Source: Fonticula alba ATCC 38817 (lineage: Eukaryota; Protista; Nucleariida). From it: a DNA stretch of 23,888 nt. The stretch is taken from the NCBI GenBank assembly GCA_000388065.2, contig KB932209.1, one strand, 5' to 3'. Made by a program: the position numbers and the translations under genes. Shown here piece after piece: positions 1-21,301 of the stretch (its first letter is position 1; the number at the start of each line of letters is the position of its first letter). The notes under the pieces are model-generated. The model was not told the origin of the DNA. It made no database searches and worked only from the letters and a program-made list of their open reading frames with translations.

Positions 1-365
1 CTCCGAGGCTCCCCGCGGCGCCCCCCGCCCGCCGCCCCCCCACCCCCACCCTCGGCCCATCGCCAAGCAAGGCACGGGCAGCGAATCGGGGCGAGGGAAG
101 GAAGGAGCCGGAAGAGACGCCCCGCGACACCTCACTTCGACCAGCATGGAGGAGGGGCGCACACGCCTGACGATAAATGCCTTTGCTTGGGGGACCGGAG
201 GGCGGGGGCCACAGCCGCGACCCGACGAAGGTCAAGAATGGGTCAACAACAAGGCCAGGCCTTTTTTCGGGAAGACATGCCCTCCCGGGCAGTGGGCAGC
301 GGCCGCCCCGGGCGCTCCTCGCGCCAGAGATTCATAGGCACCATTTGCTGGTCCTGGCGTGTGAT

Positions 366-439
366 GTCCGGATGGTGTAGTCGGTTATCATATCTGTCTT
401 ACACACAGAAGGTCCCCGGTTCGATCCCGGGTCCGGACA
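366..439 (+). tRNA. tRNA-Val-TAC: tRNA-Val, anticodon TAC (UAC), intronless
   Basis: Full cloverleaf: acceptor GTCCGGA(366-372)/TCCGGAC(432-438), discriminator A439; D-arm with AGTCGG; anticodon stem TCTGT/ACAGA with loop CTTACAC (TAC at 400-402); T-arm CCCGG-TTCGATC-CCGGG. Internal A-box and B-box (GGTTCGATCCC) present. Confidence 0.97.
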
Positions 440-442
440 GCG

Positions 443-1321: not shown

Positions 1322-2596
1322 TCAGGGGGAGTCACCGCCAAAGAGGCTGGTCCAGATGAACCCGACAACCGAGGAGATGGCCGAAACCATGGCGCCAAGA
1401 ATGCCCTCCTCGGCCGGCGGGGCAGCCGGGGCCGAGGTATCCGGCACCAGCAGGGCGCCGGAGGGCTTGCCGTCGGTGGGCTTGCCGTCGGCGGGCTTGC
1501 CGTCGGCGGGCTGGGCAGCCACCGGAGCCGGGAAGACCTCCATGGCCGGCTGCGGCGGGCAGTCCGACATCGAGGCCTGGCCCTCCTCCAGGCCGGGGGT
1601 CGAGGTTGCCGCCGGAGTGGCCGAGGCAGGGGGCGCAGGCTCGACGGCCGGCTGCTTCGGGGTATCGGCCACCACGGGCTTCGGCGGGGCGGCCGCGGCA
1701 GCCACCGGCTCCGGGGCAGGGGCGGCAGCCGGAGTGGCAATGACAGTCGGCTCTGGCGGGGGCGTCACCACCGCAGCCGGCGCCGCGGGGGACTCCGCCA
1801 CGGCGGGCTCCGGGACGACGGCCATGCTGAGCGGCCGGGGAGCGGCCACCGGCAAGACCTCCGTATTGGACGGCCCAAACTGGGAGATGTCCGTTGGAGC
1901 GAGAACCATCATGGACTGGGCACGACGGCCGGTCGGTCGAACGGCCGCCTTCCTCCGCAGGGCGCTATTGTCCAGGGAGGAGGTCTGGGCAAAGGAGGTC
2001 AGGACCAGGCAGACGGGCGGCCAGACCCGGGGAAACCGAGGGGTCAGCCCGGAGAGGAAAGCAGAGCGGGCGATTGCGAGGTGGAGGGGGGGGGGGAGGC
2101 GGGGGGGGGATGGTCGATCGTGGGGTGGCAGTCACGGACATACCTTGGGGGGAGCATCAAAGGTCACGGTGCGCAAGGTGGTCGGGGTCGGCAGACGCTC
2201 GGCCTCCGGTGAGGGAGGGAACTCCGAGTCCGGAGACTTGGGATACGGCTTGGCGCCAGGGACACCCAGGGGGAACTACGAAAAAGGGAGGTCAGAGGAG
2301 CCGGAGGAAGTGGCGCGCAAAGCATGAGAGAGAGAGCGCGCGCGCGCGCGGCGGAAAAGGAGAGACCGAGGAGAAAGAACGCACGCTGATCTTGGCCGCA
2401 AGTTTGGCGATGTTGGCGCTGACTTTGACATTGGAGGCAGTGCCGTCGGGATTAAGGTGTGGCGAGCTCTGTGGGCGTCGAGCAAAAAAAGGAAAACACG
2501 AGAGGCAAGAGGAGCGGGGCGGAAGCCGGAAAATGGGTTAATAGCCGGAGGGACGTCAATGGGTGGCCACACAGGCACCTGCGGTGAACCTACCAT
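1322..2596 (-). CDS. Gene A: 293-aa Pro/Ala-rich, largely disordered protein with a CPI-like motif and a hydrophobic C-terminal helix (hypothetical)
   Basis: Exons 2596-2594 (ATG), 2468-2385 (SSPHLNPDG...SANIAKLAAKIS), 2275-2144 (FPLGVPGAKPY...FDAPPK), 1984-1322 (TSSLDNSALRRKAAVRPTGRRAQSMMVL...GFIWTSLFGGDSP*). Donors GTAGGT, GTGCGT, GTATGT; acceptors CAG, TAG, CAG with TTAAC/CTGAC branch motifs. All introns are phase 0 (125, 109, 159 nt) and the total of 882 nt is in frame. Confidence 0.72.
1463..1507 (-). repeat. 15-nt coding tandem repeat x3 encoding (A/T)DGKP
   Basis: gggcttgccgtcggt/c three times on +; protein ADGKPADGKPTDGKP. Confidence 0.85.
2326..2350. repeat. Compound (GA)n(CG)n microsatellite in gene A intron 2
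   Basis: gagagagagagcgcgcgcgcgcgcg. Confidence 0.8.
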
Positions 2597-2706
2597 AGTG
2601 GATGGGGGTCGAGGGGGCGGGCAGCGTCCGTCGGGAAACGCGCAGCGGTGGCGGCGGAACAGCGAAAAGGCGAGGAGAGGAGCAGGACAGCAGGGGCAGG
2701 TCGGGC

Positions 2707-2961
<255 letters not shown>

Positions 2962-3397
2962 CTTTTGCAAAGGCAAGAGGCGGGTAGGGAGGGGGGAAGG
3001 AGAGCTTGGGAAAACCGGGTGACTCCGAGGCTCGATCCACACGCCGGCGGCATGGTGGCTGAAAAGTGTGTGGCATGCCAAGACCCCTCTGAGCCGTGGG
3101 GGGGGGGCGCCGGGGGAGCGCGGTCTGCCCCCATCCGGGCCCTTCTCCTCCGAGGAGGGGGGGGGACTCCTCAGGCACAATGAGAGGGAAGCACGGAGTG
3201 ACGCTGGTCGGGGGGAAAAAAAGGAATTGAGACGACACCAGGCCGGCCCTCAGCCAGGGACGGTGCGATGCGTCACCCCTTTGAGGGGCGTGCTCAGCAG
3301 GCAGTCGCGAACCCTCGGGGATGGGAAAGAGCGATGCGCGCGAGGCGGAAGGCCACGCAGAGAAGGAAGAGACCCTGCGAGGGCGAGAGCAGGTCAA

Positions 3398-3429
3398 GAT
3401 GGATGGATGGATGGATGGATGGATGGATG
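3398..3429. repeat. (GATG)8 tetranucleotide microsatellite
   Basis: gatggatggatg... for 32 nt. Confidence 0.95.
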
Positions 3430-4360
3430 CCAGGGGGAGGGTACACTCATCACAGCCCAGGGACGCCCGGCACAACCTGGGGCGATCGCGAAATCCCGCC
3501 CTCCCGACGGGCAAACTCCCATACCAAATGGGATGCAAGGAGCGCGCAGGCCCTTTTGCGCATCCTCCACAGGAGTGCCCTTCGCCGGCGTCCCAAGTCG
3601 TGCTGCACCCCTCTTCCCGGCGCGCGCACACACACACGCTGAGGCGGACGCGGTGATGAATGTGCCAGTCCAATATACGGCCGGCCAGCATCGAGGTTCA
3701 CCAGGCGCGCCATTCCTCTCGCCGGGGCGGCCTAGATGCTAGGATCGGGCGCCAGGGTTTCGGCCCGCATTCACATCCTCTAACAAACTACACTCTTCAT
3801 CGGCGGGCGGGCGGGGGGGGGGGGGGGCCGATCATCAGCCTCCCCCCGCCCACAGCCCCGGCCAAGGATGCAGAGCTCCTCTCCCCCGTCCGAGCCTGGC
3901 GGAACCTGCCGGGGGATCGCCCCGCGGAACACTCAACGCGGGGCTCACTCCCACACACCCCTGCGCCCCCACGGAAGGGGGTCCACCCGCAGACACTCAA
4001 ACGCACACTCATGCACGCACCGAGGCCCGGAAAAGGGGCCGGGAAGGAGAATACCAGACGACGGTGGAATTCGTCAACCCCGTAGAACGCCAGGTCCCGT
4101 GACGCTCCCGTGCAGGGTATATCACGAGCCACGATCCATCTTCAGAACGCCCGCCGCACACCGCGGGGCCCGGCCTGCTCGGTGGGACGCCCCCTCATCG
4201 GCGAGCGGACTGGCGTGGGAGGGGCCGCGCAGCTTTGTCCAGAGATTGCCCCCCCCCCCCCCTGCTCCCCATCACCTCCCCGCCTCCTCCATTTATTTCC
4301 GCCTTTTCTCTCTTCCCCCCCCCCCCTCCCGGCTCTCCCTCTTAGTCTCGCCCAACGGAC

Positions 4361-16280: not shown

Positions 16281-16801
16281 CGGTTGCGGCCCCCGCCGGC
16301 GCCCGGGCCCCCCCCCCCGGGGGCGCTGGCAATAGCCCGGCTTCCGCTCTGGGGGTATCTTGTCTATTCGGGGGAGGGGGGGGGGGGGGGGACTTGGAGG
16401 AGCAGCGGATGGGTACGATCGCCACACAGAGCGGGGGGATGGGACGAAGGCCCTCGCCCACATCTTGAGCGGGGGCGCGCAAGGAGCACGAGCATGGGCG
16501 TCCTCTGCAGCACACAGACACAGCACAAGCGACACAGAGGGCGGGATCTGGCCCAGAGGCACGCCGGGAACTGGGCGCGCCATGCCGCTCGGACTTCGCC
16601 GTCTGGATGAGTGTCGGCGGAGACACGCAGAGACCCACGCCAAGGGTGGCAAAAGAGGAGGGGGGGGGGGATGGGAGTGGCCCAACTGCCGCGCGGCTAT
16701 GAAGGAGGGGCGCGAGAGGCGGGCGAGGAGAGCGGCAGGCATGATCAAAAGCCGGTCACTGGGGCTCGGCCTTTGTTGGGGAAGGAAAGGCGCGCGGCGG
16801 C

Positions 16802-19800
16802 TTAGACCGTGGCGCTCAAGCGGAAGACACGCAGCAGACCCGGGTGCAGGGCCAAATGCACCTTGGAGATGGGGTGGCTCTGATAGTCGATCACAATATG
16901 GCAGGTGCCCCAGGCAGGGATCGGAGAGCCCTGCGTGTCCGGCTCGAAGCGAGCCGCGGTGACAATCTGCCCGGCCGCCGCCGCATCGGAGTCCGACTCC
17001 GAAGTGCTGGATGCCCCGGCCGCCGTGGCCGGGCCCAAGGTGCGGACCTTGTCGCTCATGCGCGGCATGCGAATGGCGCTCGAGTAGGCGGGGTTCTCAT
17101 CGGGCACAGCATCCGACCGGCTGGCCAGCGGCGACACCTTGGCCGGCAAGGGCGCCTCGGTGAGAACGGTCGACAGCATCCCGGCCCCGGGAGAAGGGTA
17201 CGCCCCCGGGGTGACGCCTGACACGGTCCGGCCAGCGGACAGTAGGGAGGGGAAAATGCCAGCCACCGCCGGGGCCGGCAGCAGCCGGGCCAGATCCAGT
17301 AGCGCATCGCCCGAAGCCCCGGCCGAAGGAGCACGGATCACCTGAGTCAGGAGCCCCCCGCGCGGGCCCTGGGTCAGCTTCTGGAAGTAGGCCTGCTCCT
17401 CGGCGGCATCGCGCGAGCGGGAACGCTTGTGCCCGGCAGCCGCCCGCTGGGCCAGCCACTGCTCGACGGTCGGCGGAGCCGAGGCCGTCAGCGGCAGGAG
17501 GTACGGCTTGCAAGCGGCCTCGCCGGAGGAGGGGAGCTTGTCGCCGATCGCCGCAAAGGTGCCCTCCAACGAGGGAACCACCTCGGCCCCGAGCTCCAAG
17601 GTCTGCAGGTACCGGGGCGGCATGCGGGCAAGCACCGGGGCAACATTGTCCACGAGGATGCGAATGGCCGCATAGGGCAGGGGCGCATCTCCATTCGGGG
17701 TCCACTCCGGGTTGGCCAGGGTGGTCACGGCGGTGGCCGAGTCGTCGGTCGTGCCGGCGGTCACCGTGGACGAGGACTTCTTCTTGCCAGCCTGACGTTC
17801 GACCAGGCGCAAGTCCGTCAAAGCCGGCAGGTGAGTGACCGTGCCGGCGGGGTTGGCAAAGAGGCCATTGTCATCGGCGGGCCGGATGGCGCTGGCCGGC
17901 GCCACGCCGGTCAACACCTGCCCGGTAATGGCAATCGGCGTGGGAGCCCGGGCCTTCGGGGCGTTGGAGCTGAAGAAGAAGGGGAAGACCCGGCGCATGA
18001 GGCCGGGATTGGCGTTGGGCTTGGGGTTGGCAGCCTGGAATTCGGCCAGCTGCACGGGGGTCGGCTCGGCGGCCGTGATGATGACACCGGCCAGGGCGAA
18101 GATGCGCGGGGGGGCACTGCGCCGGGCCACAGGCGGCGGAGCAGCAGCACCCGCACCAGCACCCGCACCAGCACCCGCACCAGCACCAGCAGCACCCGTG
18201 CCAGGCCCCGAGGCGGCGGGGGTGGCCGCGTCGCCCGCCTTGCCGCCGGCGGCCGGGGCACTCGCCACGGCGACCGGCTCGGACCGCGTGACGGAGATGG
18301 CATCGAAGGGCCGGCTGCTGGGATCGGAAAGGACATCGCCATGCCAGTTGGCCGATTCGCCAATGGCCCGGGCCAGGGCAACCGCCGCACGGTCAATGTC
18401 ACGCGCGGCGATGGCCCCATGCGCCCGGCGGGCGGGCTCGCAGAGATTCTGCGGGCCGCCAGTGGCGCCGATAAAGCCGAAGGGCACATTGGCCAAGATG
18501 GCCTGGGCATCCGGGCGCGAGGCGAAGCCATTGACCACATTGTGGGCAAGAGAGATGCTGTCACTGATGACAATGATCCCGGCAACTGGGGGGGTGGCAT
18601 CGGACCCGGCATCCATCGGCGCAAGCCCCGGCGAGGCGGACGGGCTGGCCAGCGAGGTGAAGGAAATGGACTGTGCCTTGTGGTAGGCCTCACTCGGGGC
18701 CGCGGTCACCAGCACATGGCTGTAGCCGGCCCACTCCAGGACCAGGCGCATCGTGGCATCGTAGGCGCTGCGTGTGGTCGGGTCGATGAATACCAAGACC
18801 TGGGGCCGGCTGGCCGGCAGGGGCCGGCAAACATATCCATCAGCGAGCTGGTGCATCGCGGTGTGATGCTCCTCGGCATCGGAATCGGCACTATGAGGAG
18901 GCGAGACCCGGGGCGAGAGAAAGGCAGGGGGGTGGAAAGAAAAGGGAAGAGAGGGGAAGAGAAAAAGAGGGGAAGAGAAGAGAGAGAAAGGAATAGAGAG
19001 GAGAGAGAGAGAGAGAGAGAGAGAAAGAAAGAAAGAGAAGGGAGTCAGCATATGGAAAGGGCGTCCGGATGGGAAACCACGGACAACGACCAAACACACA
19101 GGGAAGAGAGCCACGCACAGGTATGAGAAGACCGAAACACACAGACGGCCAGCCTGGAGGAAGGCCACTTCGAACTCGGTGCGGCCCGAGGAGTCATCCG
19201 TGACCAGGGGCGTGATGGCGAAGATCTGCGGCGCGGAGATGTAAAGCGGCGAGGTGACGGTGCCATTGCCAAACTCGCCGGTCGGCATAATGGCAATGGT
19301 AGCCAGGTCGGGCCGAACAAACACATGACACACGATGTTGTCCACCAGGATGGCCACCGTGGCCAGGGCCACCGAGTCGATGGTGGCCGTGTTGAAGCGC
19401 CGCGACGGGGTGCTATGATGGCCGCCCGGAGTGGCGGGGATAATTTGCACGCCATCCATCTCGGCCGCCGGCGTGGTCGGCCGAAGGCGAGCCTCCTCGC
19501 TGTCCTCATTGCCATCGTCAAGCTGGGCGTCAGGGTCGGCGGCCGTATCGATACGCAGGCCAGCCGGCTTGGCTGGCGGGGGGGGAGCCCCGAAGCCGGT
19601 CGGAGGCGGGGCCCCGAAGCCGGTCGGGGGCGGGGGGGCGAAGGCCGCCGTCGGCGGGGGCGCCTCGAACCCAGGCGCGGTCGATGGCGCGGGCGCGGGC
19701 GCCGCCGACGCCGGGGGCGCCGCAAAGGCCGCGGCTGTCGCCGGGGCCGGCTCGGCAACCGGAGTGGGCTTGGTGACCGGGACCGGGGCCGTCGTGGGCG

Positions 19801-20822
19801 GGTTGGCGAAGCCGGAAGCCGTAGCCGGGGCGGCCATCTTCGGCATCGGCATCGGGGCCGCACTGCTTGACGCGCCGCCCGTGAAGAGGTCCGGCCGGGT
19901 GGCCTGCGCGGGGCGCTCCTTCTCCGACCGGAAGTACACCATCCACGAACCGGCCGGCGCGCGGCCGGCAATGTCCGCAAAGGTGGGAGCCGCCGAGACC
20001 GAGGAGGAAAGCTTCTCCTCCTTGCCGGAGGGATCCACCGCATAGAGGGAGAACTTGGCGCCGCGCTTGGCCTCGGCCTCGAGTTCCAGCTTCTCAATCA
20101 TGGACTTGATGGTATCCTGGATGGTATCGGTCGAGGAGGGGACCACCGACTTGTAGCCCGACGCACAGTAGATACGCAGCGGCATGGTGGGAGCGCGGCG
20201 CCGGGGAGCCGCGGCGCGGCCGCGGGCAACCGACTTCAGCGGCTGGAACTGGGGAGCAGGAGATTGCCCCCGGGGGGGGGGGGGCCGACATGCATCAGAC
20301 ATCGGAACGGGATGGCAGGCGGGGGAAGGCGCGAAAGGGGCAATGGTGATTGCAAGAGGAGCGGAGGGGGGGGGGGGGGATACCTCGCCGGAGGCAGCCG
20401 GAGGGGTTGCAGTGCTCGGAGCGGCGGCAGGGACCGTGGTCGCCGGCCGGGGGGAACCCATCCCGGGGGGCGGGCCGCCGAAGCCGGGAGGCGGGCCACC
20501 AAAGCCAGGGGGCGGGCTCCCAAATCCGGAGGATGATCCGCCAGTGGATTGCTCATCGGCCGCGTCTCCGGACGAGGAGGCGGCTGGGGTAGGCCGGCGT
20601 GCCGAGGGAGGGGGGCCCATCGGCACCTTTGTCGGTGGCGATGATTGTGGAAACCGCGCGAGGGGAGACATGAGCGGAGGGCGGGGGGGGGAGGGGGGGG
20701 GGCGGTGAGTTACCAAAGGCAGACAGTCGCAGGGGTGGCGGGATGTCGGGAACGTGACGCACTTGGATGTTGGCCGCGAGTGCGGCGATCTTCGAGCCCT
20801 GTGAGCGTGGCGGCTAAGACCA

Positions 20823-20913
<91 letters not shown>

Positions 20914-21007
20914 CGACGTGGGAGGAGAGGGACCGAGGGAAAGACACAGGTTAGCCAGCCAAACGCGGACAGCAGGGGAGGAGGCGCGGGCTGTGAAGAC
21001 GCACCAT
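16802..21007 (-). CDS. Gene C: about 1166-aa multidomain protein with a CPI-like motif, Ras-association (RA) domain, Pro-rich linker, PH-like region and degenerate sphingosine/ceramide-kinase (DAGK-family) domain
   Basis: Exons 21007-21005 (ATG; in-frame TGA 15 nt upstream), 20798-20763 (GSKIAALAANIQ; alternative in-frame TAG acceptor at 20814), 20626-20384, 20248-19119, 18890-16802 (3501 nt). RA-like LRIYCASGYKSVVPSSTDTIQDTIKSMIEKL...FSLYAVDPSGKEEKL. SphK-like segments VLVFIDP, IIVISDSISLAHNVVNGFASRPD (cf. LVVMSGDGLMHEVVNGLMERPD), VTAARFEP...IVIDYQ...HLALHPGLLRVF (cf. VVAFRLEP...FAVDGE...QGQVHP). Confidence 0.8.
18144..18197 (-). repeat. 6-nt coding repeat (GGTGC[T/G])n encoding a Gly-Ala tract in gene C
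   Basis: gcacc[a/c] units on +; protein AGAGAGAGAGAGAGAA. Confidence 0.8.
19916..20185 (-). other. Ras-association/ubiquitin-like domain within gene C
   Basis: About 90-aa ordered island between Pro-rich linkers matching the RA pattern LRIY...YKSV...T..D.I...EKL.L......FSLY.V...G.E..L. Confidence 0.65.
20824..20913. repeat. G90 homopolymer (sense C90) in gene C intron 1
   Basis: Pure G run of 90 nt as assembled. Confidence 0.85.
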
Positions 21008-21301
21008 CGCGACCCGTCCTCAGCGCGCAATGGGGTGAGAGTGGAGGAGAACGGTGGGGGAGGAGGGGCAAAAGGGAGGAAGCAGGAAGAGCGGGAGAGA
21101 GGGAGAGGCAAGGGGAGGAAAAGAGGGGGAAGAAGACAGGTGGCGTTCGGCTGTGGAAGGGCGTCGGCCGCGGCCGGCGACCTGGCACCCTTTCGGGGCA
21201 TCTCGTCGGGGATGGTGGGAAACGGAAGTTTCATTGGGGGGCGGGCGGGCGGGCGGGCGCAGGGACAAGGAGCAGGGCTGTGGCGATGGGAAGTGGAGCT
21301 C

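Follow-up and report, generated by a model that had tools for sequence, protein, structure and literature searches.

A predicted sphingosine kinase-type N-lobe that lacks the canonical catalytic motifs in an orphan gene of Fonticula alba

Introduction

Non-catalytic descendants of the DAGK/SphK lipid kinase fold are already known, and include CERKL, AGK in its capacity as a subunit of the TIM22 complex, and Tim54. CERKL has revealed no kinase activity despite an intense search, and roles that do not involve phosphorylation have been proposed for it (PMC2628313). Tim54 has been proposed to be a derivative of AGK, with a DAGK domain that is 'virtually undetectable' in fungi and in Fonticula (PMC7523481). 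The gene described here belongs to Fonticula alba ATCC 38817 and is located on the minus strand of a 23,888-nucleotide stretch of contig KB932209.1 (assembly GCA_000388065.2), hereafter the window, which has a G+C content of ~65–72% and contains several assembly gaps. Transcript contigs define a spliced gene of five exons whose product is ~1171 amino acids long. The fifth exon encodes a domain whose predicted fold resembles the N-lobe of human sphingosine kinase 1 (SphK1) and from which the canonical catalytic motifs are absent. This domain is probably a non-enzymatic relic or scaffold.

The catalytic loop of SphK1 is formed by residues 79-SGDGLMHE-86 (PMC4466670); Asp81 is the proposed general base, and the (S/G)GDG catalytic motif is common to CERK (PMC10243590). 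A preliminary description of the window, made from the letters alone, interpreted the exon 5 region as a SphK-like domain in which every catalytic motif is substituted, supposed that it might serve as a scaffold or a sensor of lipids, and regarded it as a rarely described type of pseudoenzyme. The latter view is overstated, as there are precedents in CERKL, in Tim54 of fungi and in AGK through its part in TIM22 (PMC2628313, PMC7523481, PMC8101445). What would be new in the present case, judging from the structural models, is the complete loss of sequence signal in a domain whose predicted N-lobe can still be recognised, together with its fusion behind Ras-association (RA)-like, Pro-rich and pleckstrin homology (PH)-like parts.

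Predicted fold of the N-lobe

Two independent single-sequence AlphaFold models were examined, one of the whole exon and one of residues 18–185 alone (exon residues are numbered along the minus-strand frame from 18889). The whole-exon model has a mean predicted local distance difference test (pLDDT) score of 38.6, with 570 of the 695 residues below 50, and shows an alternation of strands and helices at residues 30–140. Foldseek matched it to nothing at E ≤ 1e-3, but human SphK1 took up eight of the first ten rows (best E 6.3e-3, 21% identity). The model of residues 18–185 reaches a mean pLDDT of 57 and a predicted template modelling score (pTM) of 0.60, with core blocks of 66–83. Foldseek matched it to 11 chains at E ≤ 1e-3 (best E 1.2e-4): 16 of ranks 1–17 were human SphK1 chains and the remaining one was AGK from the human TIM22 complex, with DgkB at ranks 23–24. 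An ESM Atlas shape search with the same model placed two DAGK_cat clusters at the top (TM 0.56 and 0.53), and VIA-align, run without Foldseek, likewise returned a DAGK/SphK-type fold for the N-lobe.

The matched segment lies at 18437–18814 on the minus strand (exon residues 26–151) and is superposed structurally on SphK1 residues 12–119. The models make it quite likely that this segment is a DAGK/SphK-type domain, representing the nucleotide-binding alpha/beta lobe of the PFK/NAD-kinase-like type. No CERK chain was present in the structure match lists, and whether a CERK structure exists was not checked; as SphK, AGK and DgkB are indistinguishable at these scores and CERK is missing from the lists, 'SphK-like' is to be read as 'SphK/CERK/AGK-type'. 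The alignment with SphK1 that the preliminary description had drawn along the whole length stands, at the level of predicted structure, for the first ~150 residues, for which the SphK/DAGK family comes first in the match lists. It does not extend to sequence similarity, and the C-lobe matches are by eye, in a region where pLDDT falls below 50.

Replacement of the catalytic motifs

All of the strings on which that reading had been built are present in the exon 5 frame: VLVFIDP at residue 31, HNVVNGFASRPD at 116, FGFIG at 137, NPEWTP at 393, GGLLTQVIRA at 511, VTAARFEP at 643 and HLALHPGLLRVF at 678, along with the degenerate motifs DPTTR at 36, SDSI (in full SDSIS) at 109, TGGP (in full TGGPQN) at 143 and DYQ at 668. 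A regular-expression scan for NPxxG, (S/G)GDG, G(S/T)GN and DGE found none of them in exon 5 or in exons 2–4. The motif register was taken from the trimmed VIA alignment (model residues 9–134, equivalent to exon residues 26–151, onto SphK1 12–119) and from the predicted strands; because the alignments gave only the first and last aligned residues, the exact pairing of residues with SphK1 is by inference.

In this register, all of it on the minus strand, the place of motif 1 (NPxGGKG in SphK1, with Asn22 and a Gly-rich loop) falls at 18764–18784 and reads DPTTRSA, after strand 1 (VLVFI) in both models. Strand 2 (HVLVT) ends in T62 (18704–18706), the likely counterpart of the ATP-contacting Thr54 of SphK1, which would thus be kept. 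The place of motif 3, the catalytic (S/G)GDG loop, is occupied by SDSIS (18551–18565), which immediately follows strand 3 (GIIVI) and precedes the helix LAHNVVNG; this loop is one residue longer than (S/G)GDG and its Asp is shifted by one place. Strand 4 (FGFIG) is followed at the place of motif 4 (GSGN, the Ser112 region of SphK1) by TGGPQN (18446–18463), in which a GG..N remnant can be discerned. The candidate place of motif 5 (DGE, the Mg ligands) is DYQ at 16880–16888, an equivalence made by eye only; it comes after the predicted strand CHIVID (residues 661–666, pLDDT about 50). The canonical motifs are absent, as the preliminary description had it, and its claim of complete substitution goes slightly too far, in that T62, the off-by-one Asp of SDSIS, the remnant GG..N and the DYQ Asp are still present.

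With the motif loops replaced (motif 5 by eye), canonical ATP-dependent lipid phosphorylation by the exon 5 domain appears very unlikely. The persisting contact positions (T62, D110, G144–G145, N148 and D668) raise the alternative of an active kinase with an unconventional site, where a working pocket that accepts ATP or a different phosphate donor would be restored by T62, GG..N and the Asp residues of SDSIS and DYQ. Such a pocket would have to be assembled although bulkier residues (T, R, S, I, P) stand in all the glycine-rich loops that wrap the phosphates, the proposed general base is out of place and Glu343, a proposed Mg ligand, would be a Gln. Single alanine changes at the predicted ATP contacts Asn22, Thr54, Gly80, Asp81, Gly82, Leu83, Glu86 and Ser112 of SphK1, which include most of the positions in question, either eliminate activity or lower it substantially, and activity is abolished when the proposed Mg ligands Asp341 and Glu343 are mutated (PMC4466670). 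An active enzyme of this kind is highly improbable.

Transcription and coding frame of exon 5

Transcript contigs from two samples of a single 2012 study were mapped onto positions 16500–21200. The coding part of exon 5 (16805–18890, minus strand, 695 codons) is covered without a break by one transcript record that spans 16661–18890, and the kinase-like region is contained entirely within this exon and is unbroken in the mRNA contigs. The stop codon TAA is at 16802–16804 (minus strand), followed by a 3' untranslated region (UTR) that runs to below 16500, as the contigs extend past that position. The G+C content at the first, second and third codon positions (GC1, GC2 and GC3) is 0.69, 0.59 and 0.82 throughout the exon, a Gly-Ala repeat excepted, and A accounts for 1.9% of third positions; this pattern therefore identifies a coding frame. 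No stop is encountered over the 695 codons, against 6.6 expected from the exon's own codon-position composition, one of 5000 shuffles is stop-free, and the remaining five frames carry 3–18 stops. As the frame is open beyond what its G+C richness would predict and is expressed, the gene is not a dead one. The preliminary description had likewise held that the region is not a pseudogene, and the 695 codons and one split codon, transcribed, spliced and with a coding signature, bear this out.

Open reading frames (ORFs) on the plus strand opposite exon 5, such as 17429–19126 (565 codons) and others in further frames, were considered as genes and rejected. They arise as a side effect of the GC3-rich coding sequence on the minus strand, and the introns read GT..AG on that strand only.

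Sequence searches

Sequence comparison gave no relative. A Pfam hmmscan at E ≤ 10 assigned no family to the 1381-residue mechanical ORF described below, to the 696-residue exon, to four sub-pieces or to exons 3 and 4, with the proviso that HMMER filters mask matches weaker than about E 0.1–0.25. In the same scan neither the DAGK_cat profile PF00781, the one that the preliminary description would lead one to look for, nor PF19279, the profile of the C-lobe, matched exon 5. Searches of the PDB with phmmer, using the exon and the N-lobe, returned Gly-Ser/Gly-Ala linker noise or nothing. Among 1.84 billion cluster representatives, phmmer produced no hits at E ≤ 1e-3, and the protein's own record was absent too. 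Similarly, no relative emerged from a word search with exon 5 or from two metagenome scans (N-lobe; C-terminal 310 residues), and an ESM Atlas feature search with exon 5 yielded no usable match. A hidden Markov model (HMM) was built from matches to Escherichia coli YegS; it is narrow, all of the at least 120 sequences listed being enterobacterial YegS with at least 83% identity, and against it the N-lobe, the C-terminus and the whole exon scored no better than 1000 shuffles. Orthologues of the exon 5 protein were found in none of the collections searched. Only predicted structure recognises this domain, to which the sequence methods are blind.

The same results bear on the notion that this gene is the Tim54 orthologue in Fonticula, Tim54 being an AGK-derived subunit of TIM22 in fungi whose DAGK domain has faded. 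No Pfam family, Tim54 included, was matched and no phmmer relative was obtained, and the upstream part of the protein consists of RA-like, Pro-rich and PH-like segments instead of the N-terminal membrane anchor with which Tim54 begins. Furthermore, the Fonticula Tim54 was identified by reciprocal BLAST, a procedure in which exon 5, matching nothing, would fail. The probability of this identity is minute.

A likely non-catalytic module or a possible decaying relic

The reading to which the balance of evidence leans, by a modest degree, is that exon 5 carries a diverged, non-catalytic domain of the SphK/CERK/AGK type, which would supply an adaptor-type protein with a module for binding or for structure. 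Homology to the lipid kinases, loss of activity and a non-catalytic role are what we infer for the domain. The first ~150 residues of the exon would form an alpha/beta domain that is descended from, or folds like, the N-lobe of SphK, CERK, AGK and DgkB. The Asn-Pro-Gly, (S/G)GDG and GSGN loops and, by eye, the DGE Mg site would all have been replaced in it, and the domain would serve without catalysis behind a short N-terminal module, Pro-rich tracts and the RA-like and PH-like segments.

A number of observations weigh against this interpretation. The exon 5 region is an orphan by sequence, and every sequence test of the SphK reading was negative. The Z margin of the N-lobe over unrelated folds is small, and the alignment tool itself cautions on middling Z values. 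These points would be accommodated by a generic alpha/beta domain of flavodoxin or Rossmann-like type, unrelated to lipid kinases, whose likeness to SphK1 arose by chance and was amplified through by-eye reading and a low-confidence model. Such a coincidence is unlikely: the SphK/DAGK rows show 22–24% identity, compared with 6–17% in unrelated rows, and the same small family tops every list with both models.

Further points of this kind come from the C-terminal two thirds of the exon. Residues 186–695 have a pLDDT below 50 in the sole model that covers them, that of the whole exon. The exon 5 protein is composed of 19% Ala, 10% Pro and 8% Gly and contains long low-entropy stretches. The Gly-Ala repeat mentioned above, encoded by GCN-GGN codons at 18143–18205 (minus strand; entropy 1.2 bits), is polymorphic in length: one transcript set shows a 12-nucleotide in-frame gap at 18145, and the repeat thus varies among assemblies from a single study. 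In the second sample, contigs carry G for T at 16906 at full depth, which changes T662 to P just ahead of the putative motif-5 strand. A separate difference, C for A at 16912 (Trp660 to Gly), is seen in one short, low-depth contig. The two substitutions may reflect variation between strains or alleles, or may be erroneous.

The compositional bias with its length-polymorphic repeat, suggestive of weak constraint, the low pLDDT of most residues, the non-synonymous T662P change between samples and the lack of any relative would all suit a decaying relic. On this account a former SphK/CERK-type kinase domain would now be a weakly constrained, largely disordered tail of which only the N-lobe looks foldable, and the function of the protein would reside in its N-terminal RA-like, Pro-rich and PH-like parts. 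The codon signature (GC3 well above GC2, A at 1.9% of third positions) and the stop-free frame are maintained across the exon outside the repeat, however, although neither would be expected to survive prolonged neutral drift. Strand-like segments of hydrophobic character run through residues 260–480 and 640–695, and a low pLDDT in a single-sequence model is no proof of disorder. The relic account has a small but appreciable chance of being correct.

Under the preferred reading, of a non-catalytic module, the remainder of exon 5 may be a much-inserted lipid-binding lobe, or may be largely disordered. The hydrophobic segments recur at about 260–330, 395–480, 500–560 and 640–695, and appear collinear with C-lobe elements of SphK1 and CERK, which serves as a lead only. 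In the lipid kinase family the C-lobe is a beta-sandwich that holds the lipid pocket. The C-lobe likeness to SphK (NPEWTP, GGLLTQVIRA, VTAARFEP and HLALHPGLLRVF) is similarly a lead, drawn by eye.

Gene structure and upstream segments

The gene model comprises an initiating ATG, then 17, 81 and 376 codons, one split codon and 695 codons. Exon 1 (21005–21145, minus strand, as for all exons) consists of 5' UTR and a terminal ATG at 21007–21005, its end reading ...GCGATG|GTGCGT; the contig contains no further ATG upstream. Intron 1 follows immediately, and the contigs join 21005 to 20813. The start codon is thus made of the final three bases of exon 1 and is split from the remaining coding sequence by the 191-nucleotide intron 20814–21004, which includes some 90 bases of poly(C) (about 20823–20916). 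Exon 2 (20763–20813) provides 17 codons for a short N-terminal module; its joints are seen in four transcript contigs and its GT..AG borders were checked, the cut being positioned from a '+4' reading of the transcript joint. Exon 3 (20384–20626, 81 codons) is Pro/Gly-rich, with GFGGPPP repeats. Exon 4 (19119–20248, 376 codons and 2 bases) encodes a ubiquitin-type RA-like segment, a long Pro/Ala-rich linker and a PH-like segment.

Four introns, all GT..AG on the minus strand, interrupt the gene: 20814–21004 (191 nucleotides), 20627–20762 (136), 20249–20383 (135) and 18891–19118 (228). The last of these, intron 4, is in phase 2, CT-rich, with a G+C content of 0.53, no codon periodicity and no in-frame stop, and is skipped in all four transcript contig sets; its candidacy as coding sequence was rejected, as it is spliced out. 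The mechanical minus-strand ORF extends for 1381 codons (16802–20947), passing through introns 18891–19118 and 20249–20383 because both are in frame and stop-free. The lengths of these two introns, 228 and 135 nucleotides, are multiples of three, and an annotation blind to RNA could retain both as coding.

The RA-like segment (19919–20185, minus strand) is a weak assignment: its best PDB match is the afadin chain 6amb_B (99 amino acids; E 0.036, 17.8 bits, over 45 residues), which we take to be the afadin Ras-association domain. Pfam gave no family for it at E ≤ 10, and a word search retrieved no long-protein relatives. The linker after it carries PPPTGFGAPPP repeats. The PH-like segment (19121–19465, minus strand) is a lead only, to which an Atlas feature search assigned PH, PH_20, PH_14, ISP3_C, RME-8_N and Myosin_TH1 clusters at 0.79–0.85, all below the 0.9 mark; neither Pfam nor the PDB gave a sequence match. 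Its last helix would fall at the start of exon 5 (18839–18889), where the whole-exon model has a helix at residues 3–17 that is a candidate for this element.

If these leads are combined with the motif-less domain, a lineage-specific adaptor can be envisaged, in which the PH-like and SphK/CERK-type domains would bind a lipid (sphingoid base, ceramide or other) without phosphorylating it. The RA-like segment would then pass the signal on to a small GTPase, and the Pro-rich tracts would pass it to actin or to SH3/profilin partners. This scheme is decidedly improbable; if true, the protein would be a Ras-association scaffold that incorporates a pseudokinase able to sense lipids. The protein is a candidate in which to ask whether lipids can still be read by a dead SphK pocket.

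Elsewhere in the window, a weak echo of the exon 2 peptide (ANIAKLAAKI) is encoded at 2388–2417 (minus strand), beside a very long poly-Pro-coding run (2700–2950) of another minus-strand ORF (2276–3691). The plus-strand ORF 4575–5810 matches the ELP3 N-terminal and radical-SAM domains (E 1e-13 and 2e-12); it marks a gene for Elongator subunit 3, which probably has further exons. A tRNA-Val with anticodon TAC, found by ARAGORN and Rfam, is present at 365–441 (plus strand).

Comparison with known systems

Human SphK1 (PDB 3VZB, 3VZD, 4L02 and 4V24) is among the known systems closest to the exon 5 domain. Exon 5 differs from it in having no Pfam DAGK_cat match, in the replacement of motifs 1, 3, 4 and, by eye, 5, in an insert of ~24 residues between strands 2 and 3 of the N-lobe and in its fusion behind RA-like, Pro-rich and PH-like parts. 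SphK1 is 384 residues long and has ~230 residues after the N-lobe, whereas ~540 follow it in exon 5. The bacterial enzymes DgkB and YegS (PF00781 and PF19279) keep GGDG and DGE, and exon 5 gives no signal with the YegS HMM.

CERKL offers a parallel in layout, in that its DAG-kinase-type domain comes after a PH region, although the PH-like part is only a lead in the present protein; CERK has the same layout. CERKL nevertheless retains the GGDGS phosphate-donor motif and groups clearly with ceramide kinases by sequence (PMC2628313), while the exon 5 protein retains no motif and groups with nothing.

AGK (human TIM22 complex, PDB 7CGP chain B) and fungal Tim54 are components of the TIM22 translocase of the mitochondrial inner membrane (PMC8101445). 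The Fonticula gene is set apart from both by the lack of a Tim54 match and by upstream parts of cytosolic-adaptor type. The nearest precedent for fading of this kind is nevertheless Tim54, as the loss of its kinase domain from view took place within the Holomycota, the major lineage that includes Fonticula.

The exon 5 domain would be a further, probably independent case of non-catalytic reuse of the DAGK/SphK fold, here in a cytosolic adaptor-type architecture. It opens no long-standing question and adds modestly to a type of dead enzyme that is already known; its practical value, equally modest, lies in the annotation of an orphan gene and in a test case for the limits of lipid kinase fold divergence. 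Taken together, the known non-catalytic descendants and the present case suggest that this fold has repeatedly been reused as a binding module.

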